A stretch of DNA of 41,170 nucleotides from Anaeramoeba ignava BMAN (Eukaryota > Protista > Anaeramoebae): contig JAPDFW010000020.1 in NCBI GenBank assembly GCA_028826165.1, positions 36,713 to 77,882 on the forward strand, given 5' to 3'. Each line of letters starts with the position of its first letter. Within the stretch, counting starts at the first letter, position 1. The notes below the pieces were generated by a model. The model worked only from the letters and a program-made list of their open reading frames with translations. It did no database searches and was not told the origin of the DNA. Made by a program: the position numbers and the translations under genes. Below, piece after piece: positions 6,655-41,170 of the stretch.

Positions 6655-6655
6655 A

Positions 6656-6687
<32 letters not shown>

Positions 6688-6722: not shown

Positions 6723-6859
6723 TAATTTGTTCCACTTTTTCATTTTTTGATTTTAACTAAATAAAAAATTTAATTTTGTTTTTGTTTGCTTTTTTTATTT
6801 CTTTTCCTATTAAAAAAAAAGCAAATAATTTTTCAAAAAAAAAAAAAAGATTTTCCAAA

Positions 6860-7140: not shown

Positions 7141-7144
7141 TTTT

Positions 7145-9349: not shown

Positions 9350-9419
9350 TTGTTTTTTAAAAAAGAAAACTGAGGAAAATGAAAAAAAATGAAAAAAAAT
9401 GAAAAAAATGAAAAATGAA

Positions 9420-10250: not shown

Positions 10251-10324
10251 TTAATTAAATTTTGGTTTTAATTGAGTTTATTTTTTTTAAAAAAAAGAAA
10301 GAAAAATTTTTTGTTTTTCTTTCA

Positions 10325-14966: not shown

Positions 14967-15356
14967 TTTATTTTATTTTTTATTTATATATTTTTATATT
15001 TTTATTTTTATTTTTAAAAAAAATTGAAAAAAAAAATGAAAAATTATTTTTCCGATTTTTTAATCCAAAAATTTGAAAGAATAAAAAAAAATAAAAATCT
15101 GTTTCATTTCCTCTTTTTTTTTTGGAGATTCAATATCAAAAAAAAACCAAAACAAAACATCAAAAAAAAAGAAAAAGAAAAAAAAAATCAAAGCTACATG
15201 AAAGTAAAAGTAAAAGTAAATTGAAGAGAAATGAATATAAAAAAAATAAGCTAATTTATGATTTGAATTAATTAATTAATTAATTGATTTAAAAAAAAGG
15301 GAATTAATTTGTTTTATTTTGTTTTTTCTTCTTTTTCTTCTTTTATCTGTTTTTTT

Positions 15357-18127
15357 TTAAATATTTCCCATTTCTTCAATTGATACTTGTTTTCCCATTT
15401 TATTAAGATATAAAATATGTAATTCTTGAACAATCATTTCACGTTCTTCAATATCTTTTGCAAGAAAAGAATAAATTGTACTCATTTTACTTTGTGAATT
15501 TTTCTTGAGAGCTGTATTATTAATTTGTATTCCAAATGCTCTTAAATTGTTTCTATAAAGTAAAACCTTTTCTAATCTTGAAAGTGGAATTGCCCACTTT
15601 TTAAAAATATTTTTATTTTTATTTATTTATATTTATATTTATTACTTTTTTGATTATTTTTTAAAAAAGAAATTTAATAACATACTCTAACTTTGCTTGG
15701 TTTCATATCTGAGAGTTTAACTCCAATATTAAAAACTCTTTCTGTAGACAAAACTAAACATCGAATTTGTTTCTTTTTTTTTCTATTAAATTTAGTTAAT
15801 AAAGCATGAACTTGATAAATTTCTGGTTCTGGGACATATTGTTCTTTTTTGGAATTAAATTTTATAAATAAATTTTATAAATAAATTTTATAAATAAATT
15901 TTATAAATAAATTTTATAAATAAATTTTATAAATAAATTTTATATAAATAAATTTCATAAATAAATTTCTTATAAATAAATTTCTTGTAAATAAATTTTA
16001 TATAAATAAATTTCTTGTAAATAAATTTCATATAAATAAATTTCTTGTAAATAAATTTTATATAAATAAATTTTATATAAATAAATTTCTTGTAAATAAA
16101 TTTCTTGTAAATAAATTTTATATAAATAAATTTCTTGTAAATTTTATAAATAAATTTCTTGTAAATAAATTTTATATAAATAAATTTCTTGTAAAATAAA
16201 TTTCCTTAAATAAATTTTATAAATAAATTTTATAATTAAATTTCTTATAAATAAATTTCTTGTAAAATAAATTTCTTGTAAATAAATTTTATAAATAAAT
16301 TTTATAAATAAATTTTATAATTAAATTTCTTGTAATCAAATTTCTTGTAATTAAATTTTGTAATTAAATTTTATAATTAAATTTCTTGTAAATAAATTTT
16401 ATAATTAAATTTCTTGTAATTAAATTTTATAAATAAATTTTATAAATAAATTTCTTGTAAATTTTATAAATAAATTTCTTGTAATTAAATTTCTTGTAAT
16501 TAGATTTTATAAATAAATTTCTTATAAATAAATTTCTTATAAATAAATTTCTTGTAAATAAATTTCTTGTAAATTTTATAAATAAATTTCTTGTAATTCT
16601 TGTAAATAAATTTCTTTGAAATTTTTGATTACTTTCAAAAAATTGTTGCCAAAAATCTCTTAAGGCTTCATAAAAACTATCGACCCATTCTGTTCTTTTT
16701 TCAGTACTTTCACAAAGATAAGATTGAACTTTCAAGTAAGAATTTATATCAGTTGCTGATTTTAAAAACTAATTAAAAAAAATTAAGATTGATATAAATC
16801 CTTTTATCCAAAAAAATAATTATATATAATTTTTCTTTAAAATACTCTTGATTTAGATTTTTTGTAAACAAAAAGTTGAAAAATATAAGATGATTCTGCA
16901 TCATTTTCAATGCTATGTATTGACCAAAGATCATTAAATTTAACTTTTGCAGTTTTAGGATCAATTTTTCCAAGTCTTTTATTTGTTAAAACCAAAATGA
17001 CTGGTTTATCCTCTTTTAAATTTCATTATAAATTTATTTTTGAATTTATTTTTAAATTTATTTTTGAATTTAGTTTCGAATTTAATTATGAATTTAATTT
17101 TGAATTTAATTATGAATTTATTTATGAATTTAGTTTTGAATTTAATTATAAATTTATTTATGAATTTATTTATGAATTTATTTATGAATTTATTTATGAA
17201 TTTATTTATGAATTTATTTATGAATTTATTTTTGAATTTATTTATGAATTTATTTATGAATTTAATTTTGAATTTATTTTTAAATTTATTTTTGAATTTA
17301 TTTATAAATTTATTTATGAATTTATTTTTGAATTTATTTTTGAATTTAGTTTTAAATTTATTTTTGAATTTATTTTTAAATTTATTTATAAATTTATTTT
17401 TGAATTTATTTTTGAATTTATTTTTAAATTTAGTTTTGAATTTATTTTTAAATTTATTTATAAATTTATTTTTGAATTTAGTTATGAATTTAGTTTTTGA
17501 ATTTAATTTTGAATTTAATTATGAATTTATTTTTGAATTTAATTATGAATTTATTTTTGAATTTATTTTTGAATTTATTTTTAAATTTATTTTTAAATTT
17601 ATTTATAAATTTATTTATAAATTTATTTATAAATTTAATTATGAATTTCATTATAAATTTATTTATAAATTTATTTTTGAATTTATTTTTGAATTTATTT
17701 TTGAATTTAATTATGAATTTATTTTTAAATTTAGTTATGAATTTAGTTTTGAATTTAGTTTTAAATTTAGTTTTAAATTTATTTTTGAATTTATTTATGA
17801 ATTTATTTTTAAATTTATTTATAAATTTAATTGTGGATTGCATTTAAAATTTGTAAATTGAATTTGAAATTTAAAATTTGAGATTTAAATTTGAATTTAA
17901 TTATTATTTTTAAAGTTAAATTTATTGTTATTTTTATTTTAGATTTGTCTTTTTTTTTTGAGGATTAACTTTTAACAGAAACTTTTTATATTTAAAAAAA
18001 AAATTTTATTCTTTTAAAATTTTAAATATATAAAGAATAAAAAAATACCTTTTGTTGGTTGAAATAAACGACCTTCATATTTAAGGGTTTCATCTTTTTC
18101 AAGATATTCTTGATATTTAACTTCCAT
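15357..18127 (-). CDS. 5-exon protein with two PH-like domains (second resembles the myosin-I TH1-type PH fold)
   Basis: Spliced reading MEVKYQEYLEKDETLKYEGRLFQPTK|EDKPVILVLTNKRLGKID...KKSKSR|FLKS...EKRTEWVDSFYEALRDFWQQFFE|KQY...LLTKFNRKKKKQIRCLVLSTERVFNI...KVR|WAIPLSRLEKV...EMGNI*; GT-AG introns with consistent phases. Confidence 0.75.
15858..16620 (+). repeat. Intronic 13-16-mer tandem repeat (ATAAATTTTATAA / ATAAATTTCTTGTAA)
   Basis: Directly visible; fills intron 3 of the PH-like gene. Confidence 0.9.
17015..17832 (+). repeat. Intronic 12-mer tandem repeat (GAATTTATTTAT/AAATTTATTTTT)
   Basis: Directly visible; fills intron 1 of the PH-like gene; source of spurious NLFL/EFIY ORFs. Confidence 0.9.
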
Positions 18128-18516: not shown

Positions 18517-21500
18517 TTAAACTTTTTCATAAGTAGATTGCTTTCTTGATCTTTTTCCTTTGAAAGTAAAGACGAGGAAACCAGCAAGGAAACCGACACC
18601 AAGAGAGCCCAAAACACCAAAAGCATATCCAGCTCCATTACAACCTGGGCAACTTGAAGTAATAACTTCTTGATAACAAGATAATTTTGTGCTGAAGAAA
18701 ATTTCAACCCAATTTGGTGTGTGATCACTGTGAAATAATACATCTTCTAATCTTCCAGTCTCGTCAAGATCACAAAAGAAATCATATTTCATTGAAAAAT
18801 TTTGATGTCCAAGTCCATCTAATTGATAATAATCAAGTGAAATTCCATCTTCAAGTGAAAACATAGCTATATTTTTTCAAAAATTTTAATTTTAATATTA
18901 ATTTTAATTTTAATTTGAATTTTAATTTTAATTTTAATTTTAATTTTAATTTTATTTTTAATTTTGATTTTAATTTTAATTTTAATTTTAATTTTAATTT
19001 TATTTTTAATTTTGATTTTAATTTTAATTTTAATTATATTTTTAATTTTGATTTTAATTTTAATTTTAATTATATTTTTAATTTTAATTTTAATTTTAAT
19101 TTTAATTTTAATTTTAATTTTAATTTTAATTTTAATTTTAATAATTTTAATTTTAATTTTAATTTTAATAATTTTAATTTTAATTTTAATTTTTAATTTT
19201 AATTTTAATAATTTTAATTTTAATTTTAATTTTAAATTTAATTTAATTTTAATTTTAATTTTAATTTTAAATTTAATTTTAATTTTATTAATTTTAATTT
19301 TAATTTTAATTTTAATTTTTATTAATTTTTAATTTTAATTTTAATTTTAATTTTAATTTTAATTTTAATTTTAATTTTAATTTTAATTTTAATTTAAATT
19401 TTAATTTTAATTTTAATTTTATTTTTAATTTTAATTTTCATTTCAAATTAAAATTTTAAAAATTACATAAATTAATTTTAACGATTTAAATTTTAATTTT
19501 GACCCATTGGTATACAACTTCCATCAACACGAAACATCCATCCTGGATTTGTATTTATACCACAACAAGGACAATAAGCAGTAAAATCAGGAACATTAGC
19601 ACAAACATTAGTGATATATAAATTTCCCTCATATCCCATATGTGAATAAGGTTCATCACTATATTCCATTAAAATTTAAAAAAAATATTATTTATATTTA
19701 TATTTATATTTATATTTATATTTATATTTATATTTATATTTATATTTATATTTATATTTATATTTATATTTATATTTATATTTTTTTATTTATATTTATA
19801 TTTATATTTATATTTATATTTATATTTATATTTATATTTATATTTATATTTATATTTATATTTATATTTATATTTATTTATATTTATATTTATATTTATA
19901 TTTATATTTATATTTATATTTATATTTATATTTATTTTTTTTATTTTATATTTATATTTATATTTATATTTTGATTTATATTTATATTTATATTTATATT
20001 TATATTTATATTTTATTTATATTATATTTTATATTTATATTTATATTTATATTTATTTTATATTTATATTTATATTTATATTTATATTTATATTTTATGT
20101 TTATATTTTATATTTATATATTTATATTTATTTTATGTTTATTTATATTTATATTTATATTTATATTTATATTTATATTTATATTTATATTTATATTTAT
20201 ATTTATATTTATATTTAATTTATATTTATATTTATATTTATATTTATATTTATATTTATATTTTATTTATATTTATATTTATATTTATATTTAATTTTAT
20301 ATTTTATATTTATTTTATATTTTATATTTATATTTATATTTCATTTTTTATATTTATATTTATTTTTATTTATATTTTATTTATATTTATATTTATATTT
20401 ATATTTATATTTTATATTTATATTTATATTATATTTATATTTATATTTATATTTATAGTTTATATTTTATATTTTCATATTTTTTTATATTTTATATTTA
20501 TATTTTATATTTATATTTATATTTATATTTATATTTATATTTTATATTTATTTATATTTATATTTTTATTTATATTTATATTTATATTTATGTTTATATT
20601 TATATTTATATTTATAATTATATTTTATATTTATATTTTTATTTTTTTATGTTTATTTTATTTTATATTTTATATTTATATTTATATTTATATATTTATA
20701 TTTTATTTATGTTTATGTTTATGTTTTTATTTATTTATGTTATATTTTTATATTTTATTTTATATTTATATTTTATTTATATTTATATTTATATTTATGT
20801 TTATATTTATATTTATATTTATATTTATATTTATTTTATTTATATTTATATTGATATTTTATTTATATGTTTATATTTATATTTATATTTATATTTATGT
20901 TTTATTTATTTATTTTTTATATTTTTATTTTATATTTATATTTATATTTATATTTATATTTATATATGTTTTTATTTTATTTTTATATTTATATTTATAT
21001 TTATATTTATATTTATATTTATATTTATTTATTTTATATTTTATATTTATATTTATATTTATATTTATATTTATATTTATATTTATATTTATATTTATAT
21101 TTATATTTATATTTATATTTATTTTATATTTATATTTATATTTATATTTATATTTATATTTATATTTATATTTATATTTATATTATTTATTTCTATATTT
21201 ATATTAATATTTATATTTATATTATTTATTTCTATATTTATATTTATATTAATTATTTCTGTATTTATTTTTGATAATCAAATAGATTATTGAATTAATT
21301 TTATTCAATAATTGATTATTTTTTTATTTTTTATTTTTTTATTTAAATGAAAAAAAATTTTTTAGAAAGAGATTTACTATCTCATTAATTGAGAAAAATC
21401 ATAATAATGTGAACTACCGTTTTCATCCTCTAAAGTAACTGTGCAATACTGAGGAGCTAAAGTAAATATCTGTTGTGAAATAACAATAAGAACAAGTAAA

Positions 21501-22655: not shown

Positions 22656-23980
22656 AAATAAAATTAGATTTTATATATTAAGTAAAAAAGAATTGGGAAA
22701 AAAATTTTAATTATTTCTGTTCTTTTGATTTTCCTTCATTAAATTGTATTTTTTAAATAGTTCTTTTTTATAAAATTTAAAGTAAAATTAATTAAATTCT
22801 TCTTTCAACTTTTTACAAAAATTTAATTAATTTTAAAAAGATAAAATTATAAAAGATAAATATAAGAATAAATTTCATTTCTTTTTTTATGGAATGAATT
22901 CTTAAAATTTTTATTTGAGAAAACTTGAAAAAGAAATGGAAAAAAATGAAAAATTTATTTTAAAAAAAAAATTATTTTTCATTTTTTTTTTCATTTTTTT
23001 TTTTAAATGGAGAAAAAAATTCAAAATACTTTACAAAAATTGATCAAAAAACCAAAAAAACAAAGTAATAATTAAATTTAAAAAATAATAATTTTTTTTT
23101 TTCAATACAAATTTTTTTTAAACTTTGATTTTTTGAATTTTTTGAATTTTGGATTTGGTTTAAAATTTATTTAAGAGTGTATATTTTTCTTATTTAATTT
23201 TCATTCAAAAAAATTAAAATTAAAATAAAATTTCAATTTATTTAATTAAGAAAAGAAAAAAATTTAATAAGAAATCAAATTATGAAAATAAGATTATTTT
23301 TATTTTTTCAATTTCATCAAATTTTTTATTTTGATTTTACTTTATTAAAATTTATAATAAATCATTTAAATCCAAAAATAAAAAAAATTTTAATTTATGA
23401 GAAGAAAATGATTCAACATACACTCTTAAATGAATTTTAAACCAAATCCAATTTTAACAATAGAAGAAGTTATAAATTGGATGAATCAATTTCCAGAAAA
23501 TGAAAAATTACAAGAAAATTGTTGTATTGCTTTAAAAAAACTTGGAGAAGGTAATCAAAATAAAAAAAGGAAAAATGAATTTAATTTAAATTAAAAACAA
23601 ATATTAATAAATTTCAATAGGAGTTAAAGTTGAACGTAAAAAATTAGAAGAAATCAAAATGACAAAATTTAATGCAATTGAATCAATTATTCAAGCAATA
23701 AATAATTTTCCAAATAATGAAAAAATCCAAGAAGCAGCTATTTCAATTTTAAAAGATGTTGTTATTGATTCCAGTAAAAAAATCCCATTTAATATTCCTT
23801 ATAATTTTAAACTTATTTATATTATTCTTTTTAAAAAATCAAAAAGAAAATCGAATCAAAATTGTAGAATTAAATGGAATTGAATTAATTATTAAAGCAA
23901 TGAATAATTTTCCAAAAAATGAAAATATTCAATTAAGTGGATGCTTGGCATTATTAGATATTGGTGTTACTTCAGGTAAT
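22552..23980 (+). repeat. Segmental duplication copy 1 (upstream region plus 5' exons of ARM gene A); paralogous to ~33021-34430
   Basis: Near-identical sequence including the ~400-nt first intron. Confidence 0.9.
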
Positions 23981-26900
23981 TAATTATATCTTTTTTTTAG
24001 ATTAATCCCAATTTTAATATTTTTAAAAAATAAAATAGAAAATCAAATCAAAATTAGAGAATTAAATGGAATTGAATCAATTATTAAAGCAATGAATAAT
24101 TTCCCAAATAATGAAAATATTCAATGGAGAGGATGTTGGGCATTATTGAATATTAGTATTGATTCAGGTAATTAATTAAATAAATTATTCCATTTTTTTT
24201 AGATTAATTCCCATTTTATTTATCATTTAAAAAATAAAAAGAAAATCAAATCAAGATTAGAGAATTAAATGGAATTGAATCAATTATTAAAGCAATGAAT
24301 AATTTTCCAAATAATGAAAATATTCAATGGAGAGGATGTTGGGCATTAAAGAATATTAGTACTAACTCAGGTAATCAAATAATTGATTAAAATAAATTAT
24401 ATCTTTGTTTAGATTAATCCCAATTTTATGTATTATAAAAAAGAAAATGAAAATCGAATCAAGATTAGAGAATTAAATGGAATTGAACCAATTATTAAAG
24501 CAATGAATAATTTCCCAAAAAATGAAAATATTCAATTAAGAGGAAGTTTTGCATTAATGAGTATTGGTGTTGATTCAGGTAATCAATTAAATAAATTATT
24601 CCATTTTTTTTAGATTAATTCCAATTTTATGTATTATTTAAAAAATAAAAAAGAAAATCGAATAAAAATAAGAGAATTAAATGGAATTGAACCAATTATT
24701 AAAGCAATGAATAATTTCCCAAAAAATGGGAATATTCAATGGGCTGGATGTTGGGCATTAATGAATATTAGTGCTAATACAGGTAATTAATTAATGGAAA
24801 CAAATATCTTTTTTTTTAAGATTAATTCTTTATGTCTTATGAAAAAAAAAAGAAAACAAAATCGAAATTAGGGAATTAAATGGAATTGAACCAATTATTA
24901 AAGCAATGAATAATTTCCCAAAAAATGAAAATATTCAATGGAGAGGATGTTGGGCATTATTGAACATTAGTGTTGATTCAGGTAATTAATTAAATAAATT
25001 ATTCCATTTTTTTTTAGATTAATTCCAATTTTAATATTTTTAAAAAATAAAACAGAAAATCAAATCAAAATAAGAGAATTAAATGGAATTAAATCAATTA
25101 TTAAATCAATGAATAATTTCCCAAATAATGAAGATATTCAATTAAGAGGATGTTTGGCATTAATGAATATTAGTGTTAATTCAGGTAATTAATTAAATAA
25201 AAAAAAAATTATTTTGGAAAGATTATTAATTATTTTATAAATAAATAAAAAGAAAATCAAATCAAAATTAGAGAATTAAATGGAATTGAATCAATTATAA
25301 AAGCAATGAATAATTTTCCAAATAATGAAGATATTCAATGGAGAGGTTGTTGGGCATTAATGAATATTAGTTCTAATAAAGGTGATTAATTAATTGAAAC
25401 AAATTATATCTTTTTTTTTAGATTAATTCCAATTTTATGTATTATTTAAAAAATAAAACAGAAAATGAAATCAAAATTAGAGAATTAAGTGGAATTGAAT
25501 CAATTATTAAATCATTGAATAATTTCCCAAATAATGAAGATATTCAATTAAGAGGATCTTTGGCATTAATGAATATTAGTGTTAATTCAGGTAATTAATT
25601 AAACTGAATTATTAATTTTTGAAAAGAATATTAATTATTTGAAAAAATAAATAAAAAGGAAATCGAATAAAAATTAGAGAATTAAATGGAATTGAATCAA
25701 TTATTAAAGCAATGAATAATTTTCAAAATAATGAAGATATTCAATTAGCAGGATTTGATGCTTTGAATAACATTAGTATGAATCAAGATAATTAATTAAA
25801 ATAAATGATATTTTTTTTTTGGGATTAATTTCAATTTTATTATAATTTGGAAATAAAATAGAAAATGGAATCAAAACTAATGAATTAAATGGAATTGAAT
25901 CAATTATTAAAGCAATGAATAATTTCTCAAATAATGAAAATATTCAATTAGCAGGATTAAATGCTTTGGACAATATTATTATTTATGCAGGTAATTAATT
26001 AAACAAATGATATCTTTTTTTTTGAGATTAATCCATATTTTATGTCTTATGAAAAAATAAAATAGAAAATCGAATTAGTGAATTAAATGGAATTGAACCA
26101 ATTATTAAAGCAATGAATAATTTCCCAAATAATGAAGATATTCAATTAAAAGGATTAAATATTTTGGACAATATTATTATTTATGCAGGTAACTAACTAA
26201 ACAAATGATATCTTTTTTTTTGAGATTAATCCATATTTTATAATTATGAAAAAATAAAAAGCAAATAGAAACAAAATTAGTGAATTAAATGGATTTAAAC
26301 CAATTATTAAAGCAATGAATAATTTCCCAAATAATGAAAATATTCAATTAAAAGGATTAAATATTTTGGATAGAATGAGTAATAATCAAGGTAATTAACT
26401 AAACTGAATTATTGATTTTGAAAAGAAAACTAATTATTTGAAAAAATAAAACAGAAAACCAAATCAAAATTAGTGAATTAAATGGAATTGAACCAATTAT
26501 CAAAAGCAATGAATAATTTTCCAAAAATAATGAAGATATTCAACAGGTTGGATGTTGGATATTAACGAATATTAGTTATAATTCAGGTAATTAACTAAAC
26601 TGAATTATTGATTTTGAAAAGAAAACTAATTATTATAAAAAATAAAATAGAAAATGAAATCAAAATTAGTGAATTAAATGGAATTGAATCAATTATCAAA
26701 GCAATGAATAATTTTCCAAAAAATGAAGATATTCAATTAAGAGGATGTTGGACATTATTGAATATTGGTGTTAATAAAGGTAAATAATTAAAATTATATC
26801 CTTATTTTGAGATTATGAAAAAATAAATAAAACAGAGAATCGAATCAAAATTAGAGAATTAAATGGAATTGAACCAATTATTAATGCAATGAATAATTTC

Positions 26901-27956
26901 CCAAATAATAGAGATATTCAATTAAAAGGATGTTGGGCATTAATGAATATTAGTGTTAATAAAGGTAAATAATTAAATAAAAAGATCGAAAAAGATATTC
27001 ATTTTAGAAATAAATAAAACAGAAAATCAAATTAAAATAAGAGAATTAAATGGAATTGAACCGATTATTAAAGCAATGAATAATTTCCCAAAAAATGAAG
27101 ATATTCAATGGAAAGGATGTTGGGCATTATCGAATGTTAGTGTTGATTCAGGTAATTAATTGAAACAAATTATATCTTTTTTTTTAGATTAATTCCAATT
27201 TTATGTATTATTATAAAAAAATAAAACAGAAAATCAAATCAAAATAAGAGAATTAAATGGAATTGAATCAATTATTAAAGCAATGAATAATTTTCAAAAA
27301 AATGAAAATATTCAATTAAAAGGATGTTGGGCATTAGCGAATATTAGTGTTAATAAGGGTAATTAATTAAATAAAAACAGAAAAAATTATATCTATTTAG
27401 TGAAAAATATTAATTATTTTAAAAAAGCAAATAAAATCATAATCAGTGAATTAAATGGAATTGAACCAATTATCAAAGCAATGAATAATTTCCCAACTAA
27501 TGAATATATTCAATGGAAAGGATGTTTGGCATTATCGAATGTTAGTGTTGATTCAGGTAATTAATTGAAACAAATTATATCTTTTTTTTAGATTAATTCC
27601 AATTTTATGTATTATTATAAAAAATAATAAAAAGAAAATCAAATCAAAATAAGAGAATTAAATGGAATTGAATCAATTATTAAAGCAATGAATAATTTCT
27701 CAAATAATGAAAATATTCAATTAGAAGGATTATATGCATTATCAAATATTTCTTTAGATAATAAAGGTAATTAATTAATTAATCAAAAATAAAGAAAATG
27801 AATTATAAAAAATTTTTATTTTTTCCAATAGAAAATATAAAAGAAATCCAAAGATTAAATGGAATTAATTTGATTATTCAAACATTGAAAAATTTCCCAA
27901 ATCAAGAAAAAATACAAGAAATAGGAAACAAAATACTTCAACATTTATTTGATTGA
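23007..27956 (+). CDS. ARM-repeat exon-array gene A: 3 N-terminal exons, 20 single-repeat exons and a C-cap exon
   Basis: ATG 23007 MEKKIQNTLQKLIKKPKKQ; phase-1 exons, mostly 129 nt, encoding ENQIKIRELNGIESIIKAMNNFPNNENIQWRGCWALMNISVNS-type repeats; ends GNKILQHLFD* (TGA 27954-56); repeat exon 10 has an AT donor and exon 14 an in-frame stop. Confidence 0.85.
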
Positions 27957-28042
27957 ATTTTATTCATTTTTCTTTTATTTTCATTTTTTCAAATTTTTAC
28001 AAATTCGAATAAAATGAATTCAAATAAAAAACAAAAACAAAA

Positions 28043-28757
28043 ATATTGTTTGTTCTTCTGATACAGTTTACTTATTAAGTTCAAATCAAAATTGTTATGG
28101 TTTTGGATCTAATTTTCATTGTCAACTTGGATTAGATTTTGAAACACTTAAAATATCTGAAAAACCTGTTTTAATGATGAAAAATGTTTCTAAAGTCTTT
28201 TCAGGAATTTCTTCTAATTCTGTTTTTATTTTAAATTCAAATCAAAAATTATTTGGATGTGGAAAAAATAACAATAGTCAACTTGGATTAGGTCCAAACA
28301 AAAGAAAAGATATTCATGAATTAACTCAAGTTCAAAGTATTCCAAAAGGCAAAATAATCGATATTCAAATGAGTAAAGGTCATTCAATAATGTTGATTGA
28401 AGATGAAAATGAAAAAAGAAAAATTTATTCATGTGGAAATTATGAATTAAATGGATTTGGTAGAAGTATCAATAAATTTACTGAACTCAAATCATCTTTT
28501 TTTGAACATGGTGATGTTATTGATTTTTCTGTTGGAGAAAATCATACTTTGATTTTAATATCAAATCGTACAATTATTGGATTTGGAAATAATGAATGGC
28601 GTCAATTAGGAACGAAAAAAAAATACTTTTATCAAACAAAACCAATTCGAATTAAACTTCATAAATTAACATTCAATATTTCTGATTATCATCTTTCTTG
28701 TGGTTTTCAAAATTCATTTATTTATTACATTTCTTCTCCTTTTTCTAATCTTGAAAC
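28043..28757 (+). pseudogene. Internal fragment of the RCC1-BTB gene (RCC1 blades only); duplicate of ~39399-40110
   Basis: Near-identical to the downstream gene; lacks its first ~130 codons and the BTB domains. Confidence 0.85.
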
Positions 28758-28857
28758 ATTTTTGATCTCTTCTTTCCTTTTTTAGGAAATAAACTAAGAA
28801 AATTATTATTATTTTTTATTTTCATTTTTCATTTTTTTTTTAAAATAAAATTTACAA

Positions 28858-31800
28858 ATGCAAAAAAAAATCCAAAATTCTTTACAAAGCTTTATCACCA
28901 GTTCAACACAAAGTAATAAATCTATTTTCCAAAAAAAAAATTGTAAAAAAAAAATTAAAAACAAAAATTAGTTGTTACGATAGAAGAAGTTATAAATTGG
29001 ATGAAACAATTTCCAGAAAATGAAAAATTACAAGAAAATTTTTGTATTGCTTTAAAAAAACTTGAAGAAGGTAATCAAATAAAAAAAGGAAAATTGATAA
29101 AAAATTAAATTAAAAACAAATATTAATAAATTTAAATAGGGAATGGAGTTGAACTCTCGAAAGCAAAAGGAATTAAAATTGCAAAATTAAATGGAATTGA
29201 ACCAATTATTAAAGCAATGAATAATTTCTCAAATAATGAAAGTATCCAAGAAGACTCAATCTCAATTCTAAAAGATGTTGTTATTGATTCCCGTAAAAAA
29301 ATTTACATTTAATATTTTAATTCCAATTTTAATAATAATAATATTATTAATTAATTAAAAAATTTGGAAAAATAAAGAAAATCAAATCAAAATAAGAGAA
29401 TTAAATGGAATTGAACCAATTATTAAAGCAATGAATAATTTCCCAACTAACGAAGATATTCAATGGAGAGGATGTTGGGCATTAATGAATATTGGTATTA
29501 ATTCAGGTAATTAAATAAATCAAATTACATCTTTTTTTTAATATTAAAAAATCATTATTATTCTTTGTGAATTCAATAGAAAATGAAATCAAAATAAGAG
29601 AATTAAATGGAATTGAACCAATTATTAAAGCAATGAATAATTTCCAAACTAACGAAGATATTCAATGGAAAGGATGTTGGGCATTAATGAATATAAGTGT
29701 TAATAAAGGTAATTAATCAATTAATTAAATAAAAACATAAAAAATTTTATTTATTTAAGGAAATAAAATCAAAAAAAGAAAATAAAATCAAAATAAGTGA
29801 ATTGCATGGAATTGAAACAATTATCAAATCAATGAATAATTTCCCAAAAAATGAAAATATTCAATGGAGAGGATGTTGGACATTATGGCATATTTCTTTT
29901 AATGAAAGTAAAAATCAAAATCAAAATCAAAATCAAAATCAAAATCATTTGATTGATTTAAATACAATTTAATTTAAAAATATCGGTTTTTTGAAATAAA
30001 TAATAAATAAAAAAAGAAAATAAAATCAAAATTAGAGAATTAAATGGAATTGAACCAATTATCAAAGCAATGAATAATTTCCCAAATAATGAAAATATTC
30101 AATTAAGAGGATGTTTAGCTTTGAATAATATTAGTATTAATTCAGGTAAATAATTAAAACAAATTATATCTTTTTTTTAATATTTGTTATTAATTCTAAT
30201 TTATTATTATTATTATTATCATTATTATTATTTGGAAATAAAACAGAAAATAAAATCAAAATTAGAGAATTAAATGGAATTGAACCAATTATTAAAGCAA
30301 TGAATAATTTCCCAAAAAATGAAAATATTCAATTAAAAGGATGTTTTGCATTAATGAATATTAGTGTTAATTCAGGTAATTAATTAAAATTATATCTTTT
30401 TTTAATATTAAAAAATCATTATTATTCTTTGTGAATTCAATAGAAAATGAAATCAAAATTAGAGAATTAAATGGAATTGAATCAATTATAAAAGCAATGA
30501 ATAATTTCCCAAATAATAAAGATATTCAATGGAGAGGATGTTGGGCATTAATGAATATAAGTGTTAATAAAGGTAATTAATCAATTAATTAAATAAAAAC
30601 ATAAAAAATTATATTTATTTAAGGAAATAAAAAATCAAAAAAAGAAAATAAAATCAAAATAAGTGAATTGCATGGAATTGAAACAATTATCAAATCAATG
30701 AATAATTTCCCAAAAAATGAAGATATTCAATGGAAAGGATGTTGGGCATTATGGCATATTTCTTTTAATGAAAGTAAAATCAAAATCAAAATCATTTGAT
30801 TGATTTAAATACAATTTAATTTAAAAATATCAATTTTTTTGGAAATAATAAATAAAAACAGAAAATAAAATCAAAATAAGAGAATTAAATGGAATTGAAT
30901 CAATTATCAAAGCAATGAATAATTTCCCAAATAATGAAAATATTCAATTAAGAGGATGTTTAGCTTTGAATAATATTAGTATTAATTCAGGTAAATAATT
31001 AAAACAAATTATATCTTTTTTTTTAATATTATTACTTTGAATTTGAATTTGAATTTTAATTTTATATGATTATTTGGAAATAAAAAAGAAAATAAAATCA
31101 AAATAAGAGAATTAAATGGAATTGAATCAATTATTAAAGCAATGAATAATTTCCCAAAAAATGAAGATATTCAATGGAAAGGATGTTGGGCATTAATGAA
31201 TATTAGTGTTAATTCAGGTAATTAATTAAAATTATATCTTTTTTTTAATATTAAAAAATCATTATTATTCTTTGTGAATTCAATAGAAAATGAAATCAAA
31301 ATTAGAGAATTAAATGGAATTGAACCAATTATCAATGCAATGAATAATTTCCAAACTAATGAAGATATTCAATTAAGAGGATGTTGGGCATTAATGAATA
31401 TAAGTGTTAATAAAGGTAATTAATCAATTAATTAAATAAAAACATAAAAAATTATATTTATTTAAGGAAATAAAAAATCAAAAAAAGAAAATAAAATCAA
31501 AATAAGTGAATTGCATGGAATTGAAACAATTATCAAATCAATGAATAATTTCCCAAAAAATGAAAATATTCAATGGAGAGGATGCTGGACATTATGGCAT
31601 ATTTCTTTTAATGAAAGTAAAAATCAAAATCAAAATCAAAATCATTTGATTGATTTAAATACAATTTAATTTAAAAATATCGGTTTTTTGGTAAATAAAT
31701 AATAAATAAAAACAGAAAATAAAATCAAAATAAGTGAATTAAATGGAATTGAACCAATTATCAAAGCAATGAATAATTTCCCAAAAAATAAAGATATTCA

Positions 31801-32907
31801 ATTAAGAGGATGTTTAGCTTTGAATAATATTAGTATTAATTCAGGTAAATAATTAAAACAAATTATATCTTTTTTTTTAATAATATTACTTTGAATTTGA
31901 ATTTTAATTTTAATTTTATATGATTATTTGGAAATAAAAAAGAAAATAAAATCAAAATTAGAGAATTAAATGGAATTGAACCAATTATCAATGCAATGAA
32001 TAATTTTCCAAAAAATGAAAATATTCAATGGAAAGGATGTTGGGCATTAATGAATATTAGTGTTAATAAAGGTAATTAATTAAAATTATTTCTAATTTAA
32101 TATTAAAAAATCATTATTATTCTTTGTTAATTCAATAGAAAATGAAATCAAAATTAGAGAATTAAATGGAATTGAACCAATTATTAAAGCAATGAATAAT
32201 TTCCCAAATAATGAAGATATTCAATGGAGAGGATGCTGGGCATTGGTGAATATTAGTGTTAATAAAGGTAATTAATCAATTAATTAAATAAAAACATAAA
32301 AAATTTTATTTATTTAAGGAAATAAAAAATCAAAAAAAGAAAATAAAATCAAAATAAGAGAATTAAATGGAATTGAAACAATTATCAAATCAATGAATAA
32401 TTTCCCAAAAAATGAAGATATTCAATGGAGAGGATGTTGGACATTATGGCATATTTCTTTTAATGAAAGTAAAAATCAAAATCAAAATCAAAATCAAAAT
32501 CAAAATCAAAATCATTTGATTGATTTAAATACAATTTAATTTAAAAATATCGGTTTTTTGGTAAATAAAAAATAAATAAAAACAGAAAATAAAATCAAAA
32601 TAAGAGAATTAAATGGAATTGAATCAATTATCAAAGCAATGAATAATTTCGAAAAAAATGAAAATATTCAATTAAGAGGATTATATGCATTATCAAATAT
32701 TTCTTTAGATAATAAAGGTAATTAATTAATTAATCAAAAATAAAGAAAATGAATTATAAAAAATTTTTATTTTTTCCAATAGAAAATATAAAAGAAATCC
32801 AAAGATTAAATGGAATTAATTTGATTATTCAAACATTGAAAAATTTCCCAAATCAAGAAAAAATACAAGAAATAGGAAACAAAATACTTCAACATTTATT
32901 TGATTGA
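28858..32907 (+). CDS. ARM-repeat exon-array gene B: 3 N-terminal exons, 16 single-repeat exons (period-4 higher-order repeat) and a C-cap exon
   Basis: ATG 28858 MQKKIQNSLQSFITSSTQ; all introns phase-1 GT-AG; no lesions noticed; TGA 32905-07. Confidence 0.88.
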
Positions 32908-33020
32908 ATTTTATTCATTTTTCATTTTTCATTTTTCATTTTTCATTTTTTCAAATTTTTACAAATTAAATAAAATGAATTCAAATAAAAAACAAAAACA
33001 AAAATGAAAGCCAATGAATG

Positions 33021-34430
33021 AAATTTTGATTTATAAAATAATTCATCTAACTTTTGTAAATCCTCCAAAAATAGAATAATTTTTCTTTTTTTCAGTAAAA
33101 TTTCCGGTTTTTGTTTTCTTTTTTAAATAAGATTTAGATTTTAAATATTAAGTAAAAAAGAATTGGGAAAAAAATTTTAATTATTTCTGTTCTTTTGATT
33201 TTCCTTCATTAAATTGTATTTTTTAAATAGTTCTTTTTTATAAAATTTAAAGTAAAATTAATTAAATTCTTCTTTCAACTTTTTACAAAAATTTAATTAA
33301 TTTTAAAAAGATAAATTATAAAAGATAAATATAAGAATAAATTTCATTTCTTTTTTTATGGAATGAATTCTTAAAATTTTTATTTGAGAAAACTTGAAAA
33401 AGAAATGAAAAAAATGAAAAATTTATTTTAAAAAAAAAATAATCTTATTTTTTTTCATTTTTTTTTTTAAATGGAGAAAAAAATTCAAAATACTTTACAA
33501 AAATTGATCAAAAACCAAAAACAAAGTAATAATTAAATTTAAAAATAATAATTTTTCAATACAAATTTTTAAACTTTTTGATTTTTGAATTTTTGAATTT
33601 TGGATTTGGTTTAAAATTTATTTAAGAGTGTATATTTTTCTCATTTAATTTTCATTCAAAAAAATTAAAATTAAAATAAAATTTCAATTTATTTAATTAA
33701 GAAAAGAAAAAAATTTAATAAGAAATCAAATTATGAAAATAAGATTATTTTTATTTTTTCAATTTCATCAAATTTTTTATTTTGATTTTACTTTATTAAA
33801 ATTTATAATAAATCATTTAAATCCAAAAATAAAAAAAATTTTAATTTATGAGAAGAAAATAATTCAACATACACTCTTAAATAAATTTTAAACCAAATTC
33901 AATTTTAACAATAGAAGAAGTTATAAATTGGATGAATCAATTTCCAGAAAATGAAAAATTACAAGAAAATTGTTGTATTGCTTTAAAAAAACTTGGAGAA
34001 GGTAATAAAATAAAAAAATTTAAAATGAATTTAATTTAAATTAAAAACAAATATTAATAAATTTCAATAGGAGTTAAAGTTGGACGTAAAAAATTCGAAG
34101 AAATCCAAATAGCAAAATTAAATGCAATTGAATCAATTATTCAAGCAATAAATAATTTTCCAAATAATGAAAAAATCCAAGAAGCAGCTATTTCAATTTT
34201 AAAAGATGTTTCTATTTATTCCCGTAAAAAAATTCCATTTAATATTCCTTATAATTTTAAAATTATTTATATTATTCTTTTTAAAAAATGAAAAAGAAAC
34301 TATTATCATAATCAGTGAATTAAATGGAATTGAATTAATTATTAAAGCAATGAATAATTTCCCAAAAAATGAAAATATTCAATTAAGTGGATCTTTGGCA
34401 TTAATGAATATTAGTGCTAATTCAGGTAAT
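33021..34430 (+). repeat. Segmental duplication copy 2 (includes part of the TLDc relic on the minus strand)
   Basis: Matches 22552-23980. Confidence 0.9.
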
Positions 34431-37400
34431 TAATTAACCAAATTATATCTCTTTTTTAGATTAATTCCTATTTTATTTATCATATAAAAAATAAAAAAGA
34501 AACTATTATCAAAATAAGTGAATTAAGCGGAATTGAATCAATTATCAAAGCAATGAATAATTTCCCAAATAATAAAGATATTCAATCAAGAGGATGTTTT
34601 GTATTAATGAATATTAGTGCTAATTCAGGTAAATAATTAAATATAAGCATAAAACAAAAATATTTATTTAGGGAAATAAAAAATAAAGCAGAAAATAAAA
34701 TCAAAATTAGAGAATTAAATGGAATTAAACCAATTATCAATGCAATGAATAATTTCTCAAATAATGAAGATATTCAATGGAGAGGATGTTGGGCATTAAT
34801 GAATATAAGTGTTAATTCAGGTAATTAATTAAATAGAAGTATAAAACAAAAATATTTATTTAGGGAAATAAAAAATAAAACAGAAAATAAAATCAAAATT
34901 AGAGAATTAAATGGAATTGAACCGATTATTAAAGCAATGAATAATTTCCCAAATAATGAAGATATTCAATGGAAAGGATGTTGGGCATTGGCGAATATTG
35001 GTGTTGATTCAGGTAATTAATTAATTGAAACAAATTATATCTTTTGTTTAGATTAATTCCAATTTTATGTATTTTTATAAAAAATAAAAAAGAAAATCAA
35101 ATCAAAATTAGAGAATTAAATGGAATTGAACCAATTATTAAAGCAATGAATAATTTCCCAAATAATAAAGATATTCAATGGAGAGGATGTTGGGCATTAA
35201 TAAGTATTAGTGTTAATTCAGGTAAATAAATAAATTGAAACATAAAAATTGTATTTATTTAAGGAAATAAAAAATCAAAAAAAGAAAATAAAATCAAAAT
35301 AAGAGAATTAAATGGAATTAAACCAATTATCAAAGCAATGAATAATTTTCCAACTAAAGAAGATATTCAATGGAAAGGATGTTGGGCATTGGCGAATATT
35401 GGTGTTAATTCAGGTAATTAATTATTAAACAAATTATATCTTTTTTTTAGATTAATTCCAATTTAATGTATTATTATAAAAAATAAAAAAGAAAATCAAA
35501 TCAAGATTAGAGAATTAAATGGAATTAAACCAATTATTAAAGCATTGAATAATTTTCCAAAAAATGAAAATATTCAATTAAGAGGATGTTTTGCATTAAT
35601 GAATATTGGTGTTAATTCAGGTAATTAATTAATTGAAACAAATTATATCTTTTGTTTAGATTAATTCCAATTTAATGTATTATTATAAAAAATAAAACAG
35701 AAAATCAAATCAAAATTAGAGAATTAAATGGAATTGAATCAATTATCAAAGCAATGAATAATTTTCCAAAAAATGAAGATATTCAATGGAAAGGATGTTG
35801 GGCATTAGAGAATATTGGTGTTGATTCAGGTAATTAATTAATTGAAACAAATTATATCTTTTGTTTAGATTAATTCCAATTTAATGTATTTTTATAAAAA
35901 ATAAAAAAGAAAATGAAATCAAAATTAGAGAATTAAATGGAATTAAACCAATTATCAATGCAATGAATAATTTTCCAAATAATAAAGATATTCAATGGAA
36001 AGGATGTTGGGCATTAATAAGTATTAGTGTTAATTCAGGTAAATAAATAAATTGAAACATAAAAAATTGTATTTATTTAAGGAAATAAAAAATGAAAAAG
36101 AAAATAAAGTCAAAATTAGAGAATTAAATGGAATTGAACCAATTATCAAAGCAATGAATAATTTTCCAACTAACGAAGATATTCAATGGAAAGGATGTTG
36201 GGCATTGGAGAATATTGGTGTTAATTCAGGTAATTAATTATTAAACAAATTATATCTTTTTTTTAGATTAATTCCAATTTAATGTATTGTAAAAAATAAA
36301 AAAGAAAATAAAATCAAAATTAGAGAATTAAATGGAATTGAGTCAATTATTAAAGCAATGAATAATTTTCCAAAAAGTGAAAATATTCAATTAAGAGGAT
36401 GTTTTGCATTAATGAATATTGGTGTTAATTCAGGTAATTAATTAATTGAAACAAATTATATCTTTTGTTTAGATTAATTCCAATTTTATGTATTATTATA
36501 AAAAATAAAACAGAAAATCAAATCAAAATTAGAGAATTAAATGGAATTGAATCAATTATCAAAGCAATGAATAATTTCTCAAGTAATGAATATATTCAAT
36601 TAAAAGGATGTTGGGCATTAATGAATATTAGTGTTGATTCAGGTAATTAATTATTAAACAAAAACATAAAACAAAAATATTTATTTAGGGAAATAAAAAA
36701 TAAACAAAAAAGAAAATAAGATCAAAATTAGAGAATTAAATGGAATTGAATCAATTATCAAAGCAATGAATAATTTCCCAAAAAATGAAGATATTCAATT
36801 AAGAGGATGCTTGGCTTTGGGTAATATTGGTGTTAATTCAGGTAATTAATTAATTAATTGAAACAAATTATATCTTTTGTTTAGATTAATTCCAATTTAA
36901 TGTATTATTATAAAAAAATAAAACAGAAAATCAAATCAAAATTAGAGAATTAAAAGGAATTGAATCAATTATCAATGCAATGAATAATTTCTCAAAAAGT
37001 GAAGATATTCAATTACAAGGATGCTTTGCATTAATGAATATTGGTGTTAATTCAGGTAATTAATTAATTGAAACAAATTATATCTTTTTTTTAGATTAAT
37101 TCCAATTTAATGTATTATTATTATTATGATTATTTGGAAATAAAAAAGAAAATGAAATCAAGATTAGAGAATTAAATGGAATTGAATCAATTATCAAAGC
37201 AATGAATAATTTCCCAAATAATGAAGATATTCAATTAAAAGGATGTTGGACATTAATGAATATAAGTGTTAATTCAGGTAATTAATTAATTAATTGAAAC
37301 AAATTATATCTTTTTTTTTAGATTAATTCCAATTTTATGTATTATTATAAAAAATAAAAAAGAAAATCAAATCAAAATTAGAGAATTAAATGGAATTGAA

Positions 37401-38922
37401 TCAATTATTAAAGCAATGAATAATTTCTCAAAAAGTGAAGATATTCAATTACAAGGATGCTTTGCATTAATGAATATTAGTGTTGATTCAGGTAATTAAT
37501 TATTAAACAAAAACATAAAACAAAAATATTTATTTAGGGAAATAAAAAATAAAACAGAAAATAAAATCAAAATTAGAGAATTAAATGGAATTGAATCAAT
37601 TATCAAATCAATGAATAATTTCCCAAATAATGAAAATATTCAATGGAAAGGATGCTGGGCATTATCGAATATTAGTGTTAATTCAGGTAATTAATTAATT
37701 GAAACAAATTATATCTTTTTTTTTAGATTAATTCCAATTTTATGTATTATTATAAAAAAATAAAACAGAAAATCAAATCAAAATTAGAGAATTAAATGGA
37801 ATTGAATCAATTATTAAAGCAATGAATAATTTCTCAAATAATGAAAATATTCAATTAAAAGGATGTTGGGCATTAATAAGTATTGGTGTTAATAAGGGTA
37901 ATTAATTAATTAATTATTTATTTATTTATTTTGGAAAGAATATTAATTAAATAAAAAATAAAAAAGAAAATCAAATCAAAATTAGAGAATTAAATGGAAT
38001 TGAATCAATTATTAAAGCAATGAATAATTTTCCAAAAAATGAAAATATTCAATTAAGAGGATGCTTTGCATTAATGAATATTGGTGTTAATTCAGGTAAT
38101 TAATTATTAAATAGAAAAATAAAACAAAAATATTTATTTTGGAAAGAATATTAATTAAATAAAAAACAAAAAAGAAAATCAAATCAAAATAAGAGAATTA
38201 AATGGAATTGAATCAATTATTAAAGCAATGAATAATTTTCCAAAAAATGAAGATATTCAATTAAGAGGATGTTGGGCATTAATGAATATTGGTGCTAATT
38301 CAGGTAATTAATTAATTAATTATTTATTTATTTATTTTGGAAAGAATATTAATTAAATAAAAAACAATCAAAAAAGAAAATAAAATCAAAATAAGAGAAT
38401 TAAATGGAATTGAAACAATTATCAAATCAATGAATAATTTCTCAAAAAATGAAGATATTCAATTAAGAGGATGTTGGACATTATGGCATATTTCTTTTAA
38501 TGAAAGTAAAAATCAAAATCAAAATCAAATTCAAAATCATTTGATTGATTTAAATACAATTTAATTTAAAAATATCGGTTTTTTGGAAATAAATAAAAAA
38601 AGAAAATGAAATCAAAATTAGAGAATTAAATGGAATTGAATCAATTATCAAAGCAATGAATAATTTCTCAAATAATGAAAATATTCAATTAAGAGGATTT
38701 TTGGCTTTATCAAATATTTCTTTAGATAATAAAGGTAATTAATTAATTAATCAAAAATAAAGAAAATGAATTATAAAAAAATTATTTTTTCCAATAGAAA
38801 ATATAAAAGAAATCCAAAGATTAAATGGAATTAATTTGATTATTCAAACATTGAAAAATTTCCCAAATCAAGAAAAAATACAAGAAATAGGAAACAAAAT
38901 ACTTCAACATTTATTTGATTGA
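33471..38922 (+). CDS. ARM-repeat exon-array gene C: 3 N-terminal exons, 22 single-repeat exons and a C-cap exon
   Basis: ATG 33471 MEKKIQNTLQKLIKNQKQ; phase-1 exons, mostly 129 nt; TGA 38920-22; no lesions noticed. Confidence 0.88.
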
Positions 38923-39007: not shown

Positions 39008-40722
39008 ATGAATGAAATTTTCTTTTTTGGCAAAAACTTATTTTTTGTATTCATAGATGAAATTCCATCAATAAAAGAACCATTTCCATTCAATTTTCCA
39101 AATGAAAAACAAATTAAACAAATTATTCCCAAAGAAACATCTGCAATTTTCCTTTTTGAAAATGGGGAAGCAATTGAATATAGAGATGATGCAAATAAAT
39201 ATTTAAAAAAAATTCAATTCAAAAATATCAAAAAAATAATTTCTGGTTATCAAATTGAAGCCATTTTAACTGAAGATGGGAACTTATTTGCTGAAGGATT
39301 AATGAAAACTTTATTAGGTATAAGAAATCGTAATTTTTCAACGAAATATCCTAATATTTCATCATTAATTGAAGATCCAAATGATAGAATAATTGAAGAT
39401 ATTGTTTGTTCTTCTGATACAGTTTACTTATTAAGTTCAAATCAAAATTGTTATGGTTTTGGATCTAATTTTCATTGTCAACTTGGATTAGATTCTGAAA
39501 CACTTAAAATATCTGAAAAACCTGTTTTAATGATGAAAAATGTTTCTAAAGTCTTTTCAGGAATTTCTTCTAATTCTGTTTTTATTTTAAATTCAAATCA
39601 AAAATTATTTGGATGTGGAAAAAATAACAATAGTCAACTTGGATTAGGTCCAAACAAAAGAAAAGATATTCATGAATTAACTCAAGTTCAAAGTATTCCA
39701 AAAGGCAAAATAATTGATATTCAAATGAGTAAAGGTCATTCAATAATGTTGATTGAAGATGAAAATGAAAAAAGAAAAATTTATTCATGTGGAAATTATG
39801 AACTAAATGGATTTGGTAGAAGTATCAATAAATTTACTGAACTCAAATCATCTTTTTTTGAACATGGTGATGTTATTTGATTTTTGTTGAGAAAATCATA
39901 CTTTATTTTAATATCAAATCGTACAATTATTGGATTTGGAAATAATGAATGGCGTCAATTAGGAACGAAAAAAAAATACTTTTATCAAACAAAACCAATT
40001 CGAATTAAACTTCATAAATTAACATTCAATATTTCTGATTATCATCTTTCTTGTGGTTTTCAAAATTCATTTATTTATTACATTCCTTCTCCTTTTTCTA
40101 ATCTTGAAGAAGATTTGATAAAAATATTTCGAAGAAAAGAATTTTGCGATATTTCATTTAAAACAATTAATCCAAATGAAAAGATTGAAGCTCATAAATT
40201 AATATTGAAATACAGATTAAAAGATCAAAATCAAATTGAAAAACTTCAAGAAATTATTTCAAAAATCAATTAAAGAATCAAATCAAATATTTGAAATGAT
40301 TTATTCAAATAATTCCAAAGTAAATCCAAAATTATATCCTGAAATTAAAGAAATTATAAATTTAAATGAAAAAATTGAAGAATCAATGAAAAGAATTTAT
40401 TTAAATGAAAATGAAAAAGAATAAAATGAAAATGAAAATGAAAATAAAAAAAAGTATAAATTCCCTAAATTAATATTAATAATGAGAAGTGAATTATATC
40501 GAGGAATGTTTTTATCTGTAACTGAAGATAAATCTAATAAAGTTACAGATTATAGTGAATTAAGTAATAAATCATTTCAAATATTTGAATATTGGATTTT
40601 ATTCAAATCAAATTAAAGATGAAATTCAAATTACACAACAAATTATCGATGAACTTAAAATGAGATTGATTATTTTCAATTAAATCAAAGCAAATCCAAA
40701 TTTATTGGATTTTATTAATTAA
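39008..40722 (+). CDS. RCC1-like beta-propeller plus C-terminal BTB/POZ domain(s); frameshifted in this assembly (error or young pseudogene)
   Basis: RCC1 motifs YGFGSNFHCQLG, FGCGKNNNSQLGLG, IGFGNNEWRQLG; BTB start FCDISFKT...IEAHKLILKYR; second BTB-like part LILIMRSELYRGMF; indels at ~39875-39905, ~40265 and further 3'. Confidence 0.8.
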
Positions 40723-40749: not shown

Positions 40750-41170
40750 AAATTCAATTCAATTTCAATTCATTTTTAAAATTCCAATTCAATTCGATTC
40801 AAAATTCCAATTCCAATTTGAATTAGTTAATTCGTTTTAATTCCAATTTAATTCAATTCAATTCAAAAGAATTTGATTCAATTTTAATTTTAATTCCAAA
40901 ATTCCAATTCCGATTCCCCATTCAAAATTCGATTCAATTCAATTTTAGATACCAAATTCCAATTCCAATTCAATTCCAAAATTTCCCAATTCAATTCAAT
41001 TCAAAATTGAAAATTCTAAAAATTCAATTCAGTTGATTCAATTCAAAATTCCAATTTCGATTTTAATTCAATTCAATTTAATTTCAATTCAATTTAATTC
41101 AATTCAAAAATTCAATTCAGAATTCCAAATTCAATTTAATTCAATTTAATTCAATTTGATCCAATTCAAT
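40750..41170 (+). repeat. Degenerate (AATTC/AATTCC)n microsatellite
   Basis: Directly visible; same family as 1-320. Confidence 0.85.

Follow-up and report, generated by a model that had tools for sequence, protein, structure and literature searches.

A family of predicted armadillo-repeat genes built from one-exon-one-repeat cassettes in Anaeramoeba ignava

Introduction

The leucine-rich repeat (LRR) genes of Tetrahymena are composed of tens of thousands of exons of exactly 90 bp (about 50,000), which have phase-2 introns between them, multiply by unequal crossing-over and evolve under purifying selection (PMC6564038). In Ectocarpus, the ROCO-LRR genes and the NB-ARC genes with tetratricopeptide repeats (NB-ARC-TPR) are exon-shuffled candidate immune receptors (PMC3341825; PMC11378527). 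Among the armadillo (ARM) repeat proteins, ARMC5 binds its substrate through the ARM domain and CUL3 through the BTB domain (PMC9462479; PMC5309699). Here, a stretch of 41,170 nucleotides from Anaeramoeba ignava BMAN (contig JAPDFW010000020.1, positions 36,713 to 77,882; hereafter the window, numbered from its first letter) was analyzed. It carries three tandem genes, A, B and C, in which long series of exons each encode one predicted ARM repeat, and in which a previous reading of the sequence alone (the original prediction) had seen a candidate system for the diversification of modular receptors.

The text of the A. ignava genome paper (PMC11550330) makes no mention of armadillo, aardvark, BTB or RCC1, and the part of its supplementary files that was available holds no match for armadillo, aardvark, RCC1 or catenin. 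A very large family of BTB-ARM, RCC1-BTB and ARM-only proteins, possibly ubiquitin-ligase adaptors, seems to be undescribed. The reading favored here, with a probability of about 0.8, is that the window holds three tandem members and one older, opposite-strand member of a lineage-specific ARM family that expands by cassette duplication and encodes intracellular binding modules.

Results

Three Tandem Genes Consist of Symmetric Repeat Exons

The repeat exons were located by script and by reading of the sequence, and the gene models rest on the genomic sequence (Table 1). Each of the genes A, B and C comprises an ATG-bearing exon 1 of 58 or 55 nt, a pair of N-cap exons with 87 and 153 nt, a repeat array and a 125-nt C-cap exon with a TGA stop codon. 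A scripted recount reproduced exactly the 20, 16 and 22 repeat exons (58 in total) and the gene coordinates of the original prediction. The length was 129 nt in 52 of these exons, 132 nt in four, 135 nt in one (A04) and 123 nt in one (A12). Since exon 1 measures 3n+1 nt and all of the internal exons are multiples of 3, all of the introns are in phase 1 and all internal exons are symmetric (1-1), as had been proposed. The caps are shared as well, the C-cap exons of the three genes being 99–100% identical and the 5' regions of A and C 95.7% identical.

The acceptor is AG in all 58 repeat exons and the donor GT in 57, mostly within GTAAxTAA. The introns are short (56–117 nt, median 73) and have a GC content of 12%, versus 23.5% in the exons. 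Their lengths modulo 3 are spread evenly (22/19/17), and this lack of preference for multiples of 3 indicates real introns rather than in-frame linkers. The introns after B03, B07, B11, B15 and C21 (e.g., 29908–30016) are longer (88–117 nt) and begin with an (AAAATC)n microsatellite; the exons in front of them belong to a repeat subtype with Trp-His at repeat positions 36–37 instead of the usual Met-Asn.

Two exons of gene A depart from the uniformity that had been claimed for the arrays. Exon A10 (25659–25787) has a non-canonical AT donor, with an in-phase cryptic GT 12 nt upstream. Exon A14 (26455–26586; 132 nt) carries +1 and +2 insertions in A/T homopolymer runs (net +3) with an in-frame TAA between them; it falls into three frame fragments and is either defective or an assembly error. 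Both lesions may represent real decay or errors of the assembly.

Each Repeat Exon Encodes One Predicted ARM Repeat

Pfam scans were performed on single exons or on whole database paralogues. Single exons of genes A–C reached 17.8–19.3 bits on ARM_LRRK2, below the cut-off of 26.2, which is set for the whole domain, and one exon of the additional array, gene D (see below), exceeded the gathering score of Pfam Arm (21.0 vs 20.6). The whole paralogous proteins scored 46–86 bits on Arm and 52–123 bits on ARM_LRRK2. Moreover, a profile of 62 single-exon translations detected 4,412 proteins at E ≤ 0.001 among 1.84 billion proteins, and the best named matches were A. ignava proteins automatically annotated as "aardvark".

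AlphaFold was used with a 38-row alignment to model the ARM region (P0002:499-835) of the closest paralogue in the databases, in whose repeats about 70% of positions, as estimated by eye, agree with the window consensus. Within each 43-residue period, the model (pLDDT 96.1) has three helices, which measure 9, 10 and 14 residues. In a Foldseek comparison with the PDB, 329 structures matched it at E ≤ 0.001, and the best were designed armadillo proteins and beta-catenin (probability 1.00, TM 0.60–0.78). The profile matches, the paralogue model and the Foldseek result thus agree with the ARM assignment first made from the sequence alone. Each intron is placed in the loop that leads from helix 3 of a repeat to helix 1 of the following one; therefore, one exon corresponds to exactly one structural repeat (helices 1–3). 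Each of the genes A–C is predicted to encode a soluble solenoid made of an N-cap, 16–22 near-identical 43-residue ARM repeats and a C-cap.

The Exons Are Maintained as Coding Sequence

Relative to the consensus, each of the 52 exons with a length of 129 nt carries 5–28 substitutions, and the repeats within A–C are 86% identical on average. No stop codon was found in any of the 52, while the neutral expectation is 25 exons with stops under a uniform substitution spectrum and 33 under an AT-biased one. Indels are common in the introns, and exon lengths vary only by multiples of 3. The overall pairwise ratio of nonsynonymous to synonymous substitution (dN/dS, omega; Nei-Gojobori) was 0.5–0.6. The absence of stops, the exon lengths and this ratio together argue that the exons are maintained as coding sequence. 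The open frames, exon lengths and splice sites are under purifying selection.

These data also bear on the proposal that the arrays are a non-functional, satellite-like amplification of decaying pseudogenes, or an artefact in which repeats were collapsed or expanded by the assembly. The mutated donor and the stop-containing exon of gene A would fit such an origin, as would the truncated RCC1 pseudogene adjoining that gene and the 4-exon blocks of gene B, which are at least 95% identical and whose copy number could be mis-assembled. Nevertheless, 56 of the 58 exons are intact where neutrality predicts stops in 25–33 of 52, the frequent indels of the introns have no counterpart in the exons other than shifts by multiples of 3, and 20 other loci as well as a transcript-derived paralogue show this design too. 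In addition, the units differ by 5–30%, which is enough for long reads to resolve them. An origin by amplification or mis-assembly is thus very unlikely.

Arrays Grow by Duplication of Exon and Intron Blocks

The evolution of the arrays was read from identity matrices of the exon+intron units. Gene B is made of about four copies of a 4-unit higher-order repeat, with an identity of 90–95% or more, introns included. In gene C, units 4–7 match units 8–11, and gene A is older, with the middle of its array decayed. The first and last units, the caps and the 5' region are collinear between the three genes, so that genes with near-identical caps differ in their number of units (20, 16 and 22). The matrices therefore bear out that the paralogues vary in the number and order of their repeats.

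These patterns show that the arrays lengthen, shorten and are reordered as blocks of one to four exon+intron units are duplicated in tandem or deleted, presumably through unequal crossing-over or replication slippage. Whole genes multiply by segmental duplication, and a recent event of this kind is marked by the truncated RCC1 copy between A and B. The birth and death of units is frame-safe because the exons are symmetric, and the diversity of the repertoire would arise from ordinary germline birth-and-death evolution. A programmed diversification system found no support here, since germline tandem duplication of exon+intron blocks explains the differences between arrays and no dN/dS above 1 was obtained.

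A related proposal invokes RNA-level diversification, in which exons would be skipped, under regulation or stochastically, to give many DSCAM-type isoforms of varied repeat number and order from each gene. Symmetry, which this would require, holds for each of the 58 repeat exons and for the two N-cap exons, and the defective exons A10 and A14 could be skipped without a frameshift. By contrast, strong and canonical splice sites occur uniformly, neither competing nor selector elements were apparent, and the symmetry of the exons is an automatic by-product of cassette duplication. The published LRR analogues show constitutive arrays (PMC6564038). Dropping one of 20 near-identical repeats, moreover, would alter the binding surface little. 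Combinatorial splicing is thus quite unlikely, and germline duplication of cassettes is preferred.

Variation Is Concentrated on One Face of Helix 3

Among the 52 window exons, the entropy was maximal at repeat position 36 and high at positions 2, 13, 23, 29, 30, 33, 40 and 42. In 252 repeats from other loci, the peaks were found at positions 36, 40, 30, 29, 33 and 26, with the scaffold positions nearly invariant. One face of helix 3 is made up of positions 26, 29/30, 33, 36/37 and 40; it is the face that lines the ligand groove in importin-alpha, beta-catenin and designed ARM proteins. Omega on this face reached 0.93 over all pairs and 0.81 over independent pairs, compared with 0.45–0.49 elsewhere; it was raised, yet the pairwise Nei-Gojobori estimates gave no value above 1. 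Diversifying selection on the helix-3 face is possible. An evolvable family of modular binders, as in the original description, is a fair reading in view of this location of the variation on a ligand-binding face.

Of the 52 window exons, 33 encode Trp at repeat position 33 and 42 encode Asn at position 37. In importin-alpha and in designed armadillo repeat proteins (dArmRPs), such a Trp/Asn ladder (W-x-x-x-N) on helix 3 binds extended peptides. Family-wide, Gly is commoner than Trp at position 33.

The regularity of the window repeats could also point to a structural role, in which the long solenoids act as rulers, spacers or scaffolds for cytoskeleton, membrane or symbiosome and the number of repeats matters while their sequence diversity does not. 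The 86% mean identity within A–C fits this, the ladder present in most repeats would read a periodic ligand, and the 16–30 repeats per array far exceed typical ARM binding domains. A groove that is hypervariable family-wide and the fusion of paralogues to BTB, RING and kinase domains, however, fit target recognition better, and a purely structural role is considered rather unlikely.

The Window Genes Belong to a Large Family With Partner Domains

A first look through the genome yielded 1,577 exon candidates, and all of the 150 that were scored had E < 1e-20, on more than 20 contigs. The family is accordingly estimated at about 1,500 such exons genome-wide. In 20 other loci of 10 kb, 364 repeats were found, nearly all of them one per open segment, in AG..GT phase-1 exons of 129 or 132 nt. 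The three arrays that had drawn attention to the window are real, but they are not a special locus: they represent a small sample of the family, to which a fourth array at 10521–14567 also belongs.

In at least 13 of the 20 loci, the same strand encodes a BTB domain upstream; one locus has a RING-kinase-SH3 combination. In the window, tblastn detected no BTB in genes A–D, and what BTB-related sequence there is belongs to the separate RCC1-BTB gene that follows gene C. Another paralogue, P0003 (A. ignava KAJ5068999.1), has the architecture ARM-RCC1-BTB. Its 99% match to the genome that holds the window assigns this genome to A. ignava. At its locus (L009, G000:C111:93458-98218), P0003 lies almost entirely in one open frame of 1,066 codons, being intron-poor; therefore, intron-poor and cassette-exon versions of the ARM family coexist in one genome.

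Evidence of splicing came from P0083, a transcriptome-derived A. ignava protein that matches a BTB-ARM locus at 100% and extends over phase-1 GT..AG introns as far as the first ARM exons. This shows that phase-1 introns of this kind are spliced in vivo, at a paralogue outside the window. Compared with contig C74 (L011), P0083 is perfect over residues 1–487, then drops to 94% and 59%, and its end matches G000:C24:230494-230916 at 92%; the transcript assembly has probably joined paralogous repeats into a chimera.

Additionally, a relative of 4,454 residues from another eukaryote was found (L034, Logan SRR33036520 contig, gene 3001–16365). It is intronless and has 39 related ARM repeats, which indicates that the cassette structure belongs to the A. 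ignava lineage and not to the protein family. Its gene adjoins VPS13 fragments.

The Products Are Best Read as Intracellular Binding Modules

The products of A–C have no signal peptide or membrane segment, and their first exon is short and encodes a basic peptide. A binder or adaptor inside the cell therefore fits better than a surface receptor, and the fusion of paralogues to BTB, RING-kinase-SH3 and RCC1-BTB suggests intracellular ubiquitin-ligase or signalling adaptors. On both grounds, the receptor for symbiont or pathogen recognition that had been suggested lacks support, and the domain context, being intracellular, partly contradicts it. The best-supported interpretation is that the arrays are intracellular protein- or peptide-binding modules. 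In most members of the family, by analogy with ARMC5, the ARM array would be the substrate-recognition part of Cullin-3-type adaptors, while the ARM-only genes of the window would probably be stand-alone binders or partners of the adjacent RCC1-BTB gene.

Such modules could also take part in a germline arms race, in which fast-evolving BTB-ARM adaptors and stand-alone arrays would surveil symbiont, prey-bacterial or viral proteins inside the cell, in analogy to the BTB-MATH or F-box expansions and to the LRR/TPR exon families of Ectocarpus. The family has undergone a large, lineage-specific expansion, only the groove face of helix 3 is hypervariable, the arrays are young and differ in copy number between paralogues, and birth and death are visible in the decaying gene A and the truncated RCC1 copy. 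The host, moreover, lives with sulfate-reducing symbionts (PMC11550330). On the other hand, dN/dS on the helix-3 face is 0.8–0.9 and not above 1, and the young arrays of the window are nearly uniform rather than diverse. An arms race is possible but doubtful, and the reading as intracellular protein- or peptide-binding modules is preferred.

Other Features of the Locus

The window is extremely AT-rich, with a GC content of about 18–20%. Tandem Repeats Finder reported periods of 203, 201 and 209 nt on the + strand at 23830–27730, 29370–32490 and 34282–38751. The coordinates of the genes are collected in Table 1.

Table 1. Genes, arrays and other features of the 41,170-nt window.
Feature	Position	Strand	Description
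Gene A (predicted)	23007–27956	+	Exon 1, 23007–23064; N-cap exons, 23464–23550 and 23621–23773
Gene A array	23847–27766	+	20 repeat exons; C-cap, 27832–27956, with TGA at its end; nominal product about 1,002 aa
Gene B (predicted)	28858–32907	+	Exon 1, 28858–28912; N-cap exons, 28984–29070 and 29140–29292
Gene B array	29378–32717	+	16 repeat exons, 4-exon higher-order repeat; C-cap, 32783–32907; about 828 aa
Gene C (predicted)	33471–38922	+	Exon 1, 33471–33525; N-cap exons, 33915–34001 and 34071–34223
Gene C array	34297–38734	+	22 repeat exons; C-cap, 38798–38922; about 1,086 aa
Gene D	10521–14567	−	At least 17 exons of 126–132 nt, phase 1, one ARM repeat each
RCC1-like fragment, truncated	28020–28790	+	Intergenic (A/B); matches part of the RCC1-BTB gene at about 99% identity
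RCC1-BTB gene	39008–40720	+	Directly 3' of gene C, 86 nt past its stop
Long open reading frame	931–5475	+	1,514 codons; rich in Asn/Gln/Lys low complexity
Long open reading frame	7145–9349	−	734 codons; rich in Asn/Gln/Lys low complexity

Gene D had been missed by the original prediction. Its repeats are far more diverged from one another than those of A–C, so that it is taken for an older array. A 431-nt intron of this gene holds a (TTTTGA)x61 microsatellite (14035–14405).

The RCC1-BTB gene contains an in-frame TGA at 39881–39883, inside a patch of compensating indels that nets −3. This patch and the similar one in exon A14 may be real lesions, or errors made at A/T runs during assembly or polishing. 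RCC1-BTB genes, too, form a hugely expanded family, with 3,468 first-look candidates in the genome; 41 further loci were scored (42 with the gene of P0003 itself), each about 60% identical to P0003 over about 575 residues. Many of the RCC1-BTB genes, and several of the ARM arrays, are located no more than a few kb from a contig end (e.g., C62, C127, C69 and C17).

No convincing Pfam family was found for the two long open reading frames. A ciliate genetic code was considered and rejected, on the basis of the 1,514-codon frame under the standard code, the lack of in-frame TAA/TAG in the intact exons and repeat-unit lengths that are not multiples of 3. Very long simple repeats, namely (TATTTA)x262, a 12-mer x66, a 15-mer x50 and a 31-mer x27, are distributed among 19689–21250, 17031–17829, 15862–16574 and 9405–10248, and AATTC-type repeats occupy both ends of the window (1–320 and 40751–41170).

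Discussion

Several observations weigh against the interpretation of A–C as members of a working family of intracellular binders. Gene A carries two lesions, the A10 donor and the A14 stop, and is possibly decaying, and the RCC1-BTB gene adjoining gene C has an in-frame stop. The models of A–C were read from genomic DNA alone, with splicing seen only at a paralogue, and no protein encoded by these genes was found in the profile search of 1.84 billion proteins or in word-based collection searches, possibly because this genome's records are withheld. Likewise, no annotated gene model turned up for two open reading frames of the window or for the protein P0006. The three genes lack a BTB or other effector domain, and the adaptor role is extrapolated from paralogues. 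The binding of ligands by the arrays is putative, and relaxed constraint would account for a dN/dS near 1 on the helix-3 face as well as diversifying selection does.

A bolder version would have A. ignava use its approximately 1,500 frame-neutral cassettes as a generator of repertoire, through rapid germline reshuffling and possibly combinatorial exon skipping. The outcome would be a large, shifting stock of modular peptide binders, mostly mounted on BTB/Cullin-3 adaptors, that survey foreign proteins of symbionts, prey or viruses and degrade them. This is unlikely; if true, it would be a natural counterpart of designed armadillo binders serving the intracellular immunity of a protist.

Among the known systems, the dArmRPs (PDB 4rv1, 6s9o and 5mfm), which were among the best structural matches of the paralogue model, and importin-alpha share with the A. 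ignava arrays near-identical, consensus-like repeats in a regular superhelix and have the Trp and Asn four residues apart on helix 3 that occur in most window repeats. The A. ignava arrays differ in being natural and in having 16–22 repeats versus 4–10, and their binding of peptides is putative. No IBB match was obtained on the one N-cap exon scanned, and no importin-beta-binding domain was identified. Such near-consensus natural arrays may be of interest to engineers of designed armadillo repeat proteins.

Adaptors of the ARMC5 type likewise combine ARM and BTB in one polypeptide, as do most of the sampled paralogues, which also give weak matches to Pfam ARM_ARMC5. However, the paralogues have the BTB domain N-terminal and the ARM repeats C-terminal, in the reversed order, their arrays greatly exceed those of ARMC5 in length and uniformity, and their family has undergone a huge expansion. 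The window genes A–C have no BTB, and binding of Cullin-3 by the paralogues is predicted. An assembly of the VLR type is argued against by the completeness of the genes, which have a start, caps, a stop and canonical splice sites.

The next-closest analogues are the Ectocarpus families. There too, cassettes of one repeat per exon (72-nt LRR and 126-nt TPR exons) vary in number and order between recent paralogues, the genes are clustered and subject to birth and death, and the variable residues lie on the binding face. By contrast, positive selection has been demonstrated in Ectocarpus, while omega in A. ignava is 0.8–0.9, and the arrays are mounted on NB-ARC or ROC-COR there and on BTB, RING-kinase or RCC1-BTB, or on no partner in the window genes, here.

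The closest analogue is found in the LRR arrays of Tetrahymena (PMC6564038). Both systems have one repeat per exon, a uniform exon length and intron phase and a very large family; in both, exon+intron units are conserved at the nucleotide level and array length varies among close paralogues (3–50 exons in Tetrahymena). Growth by unequal crossing-over, which is presumed here, purifying selection and a function that is unassigned are further common traits. They differ in the fold (LRR vs ARM), exon length (90 vs 129 nt), intron phase (2 vs 1), host (ciliate vs metamonad) and number of exons (about 50,000 vs roughly 1,500), and in the BTB, RING-kinase and RCC1 partners of A. ignava. Unlike in the Tetrahymena family, no associated retrotransposon was seen.

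Extreme one-exon-one-repeat families have been documented for LRR and TPR in Tetrahymena and Ectocarpus, and no report was found for armadillo repeats. The A. ignava family is an independent, convergent case in a metamonad, with the same architecture on another fold, and this convergence supports symmetric exon cassettes as a general route to the fast expansion of solenoid binders.

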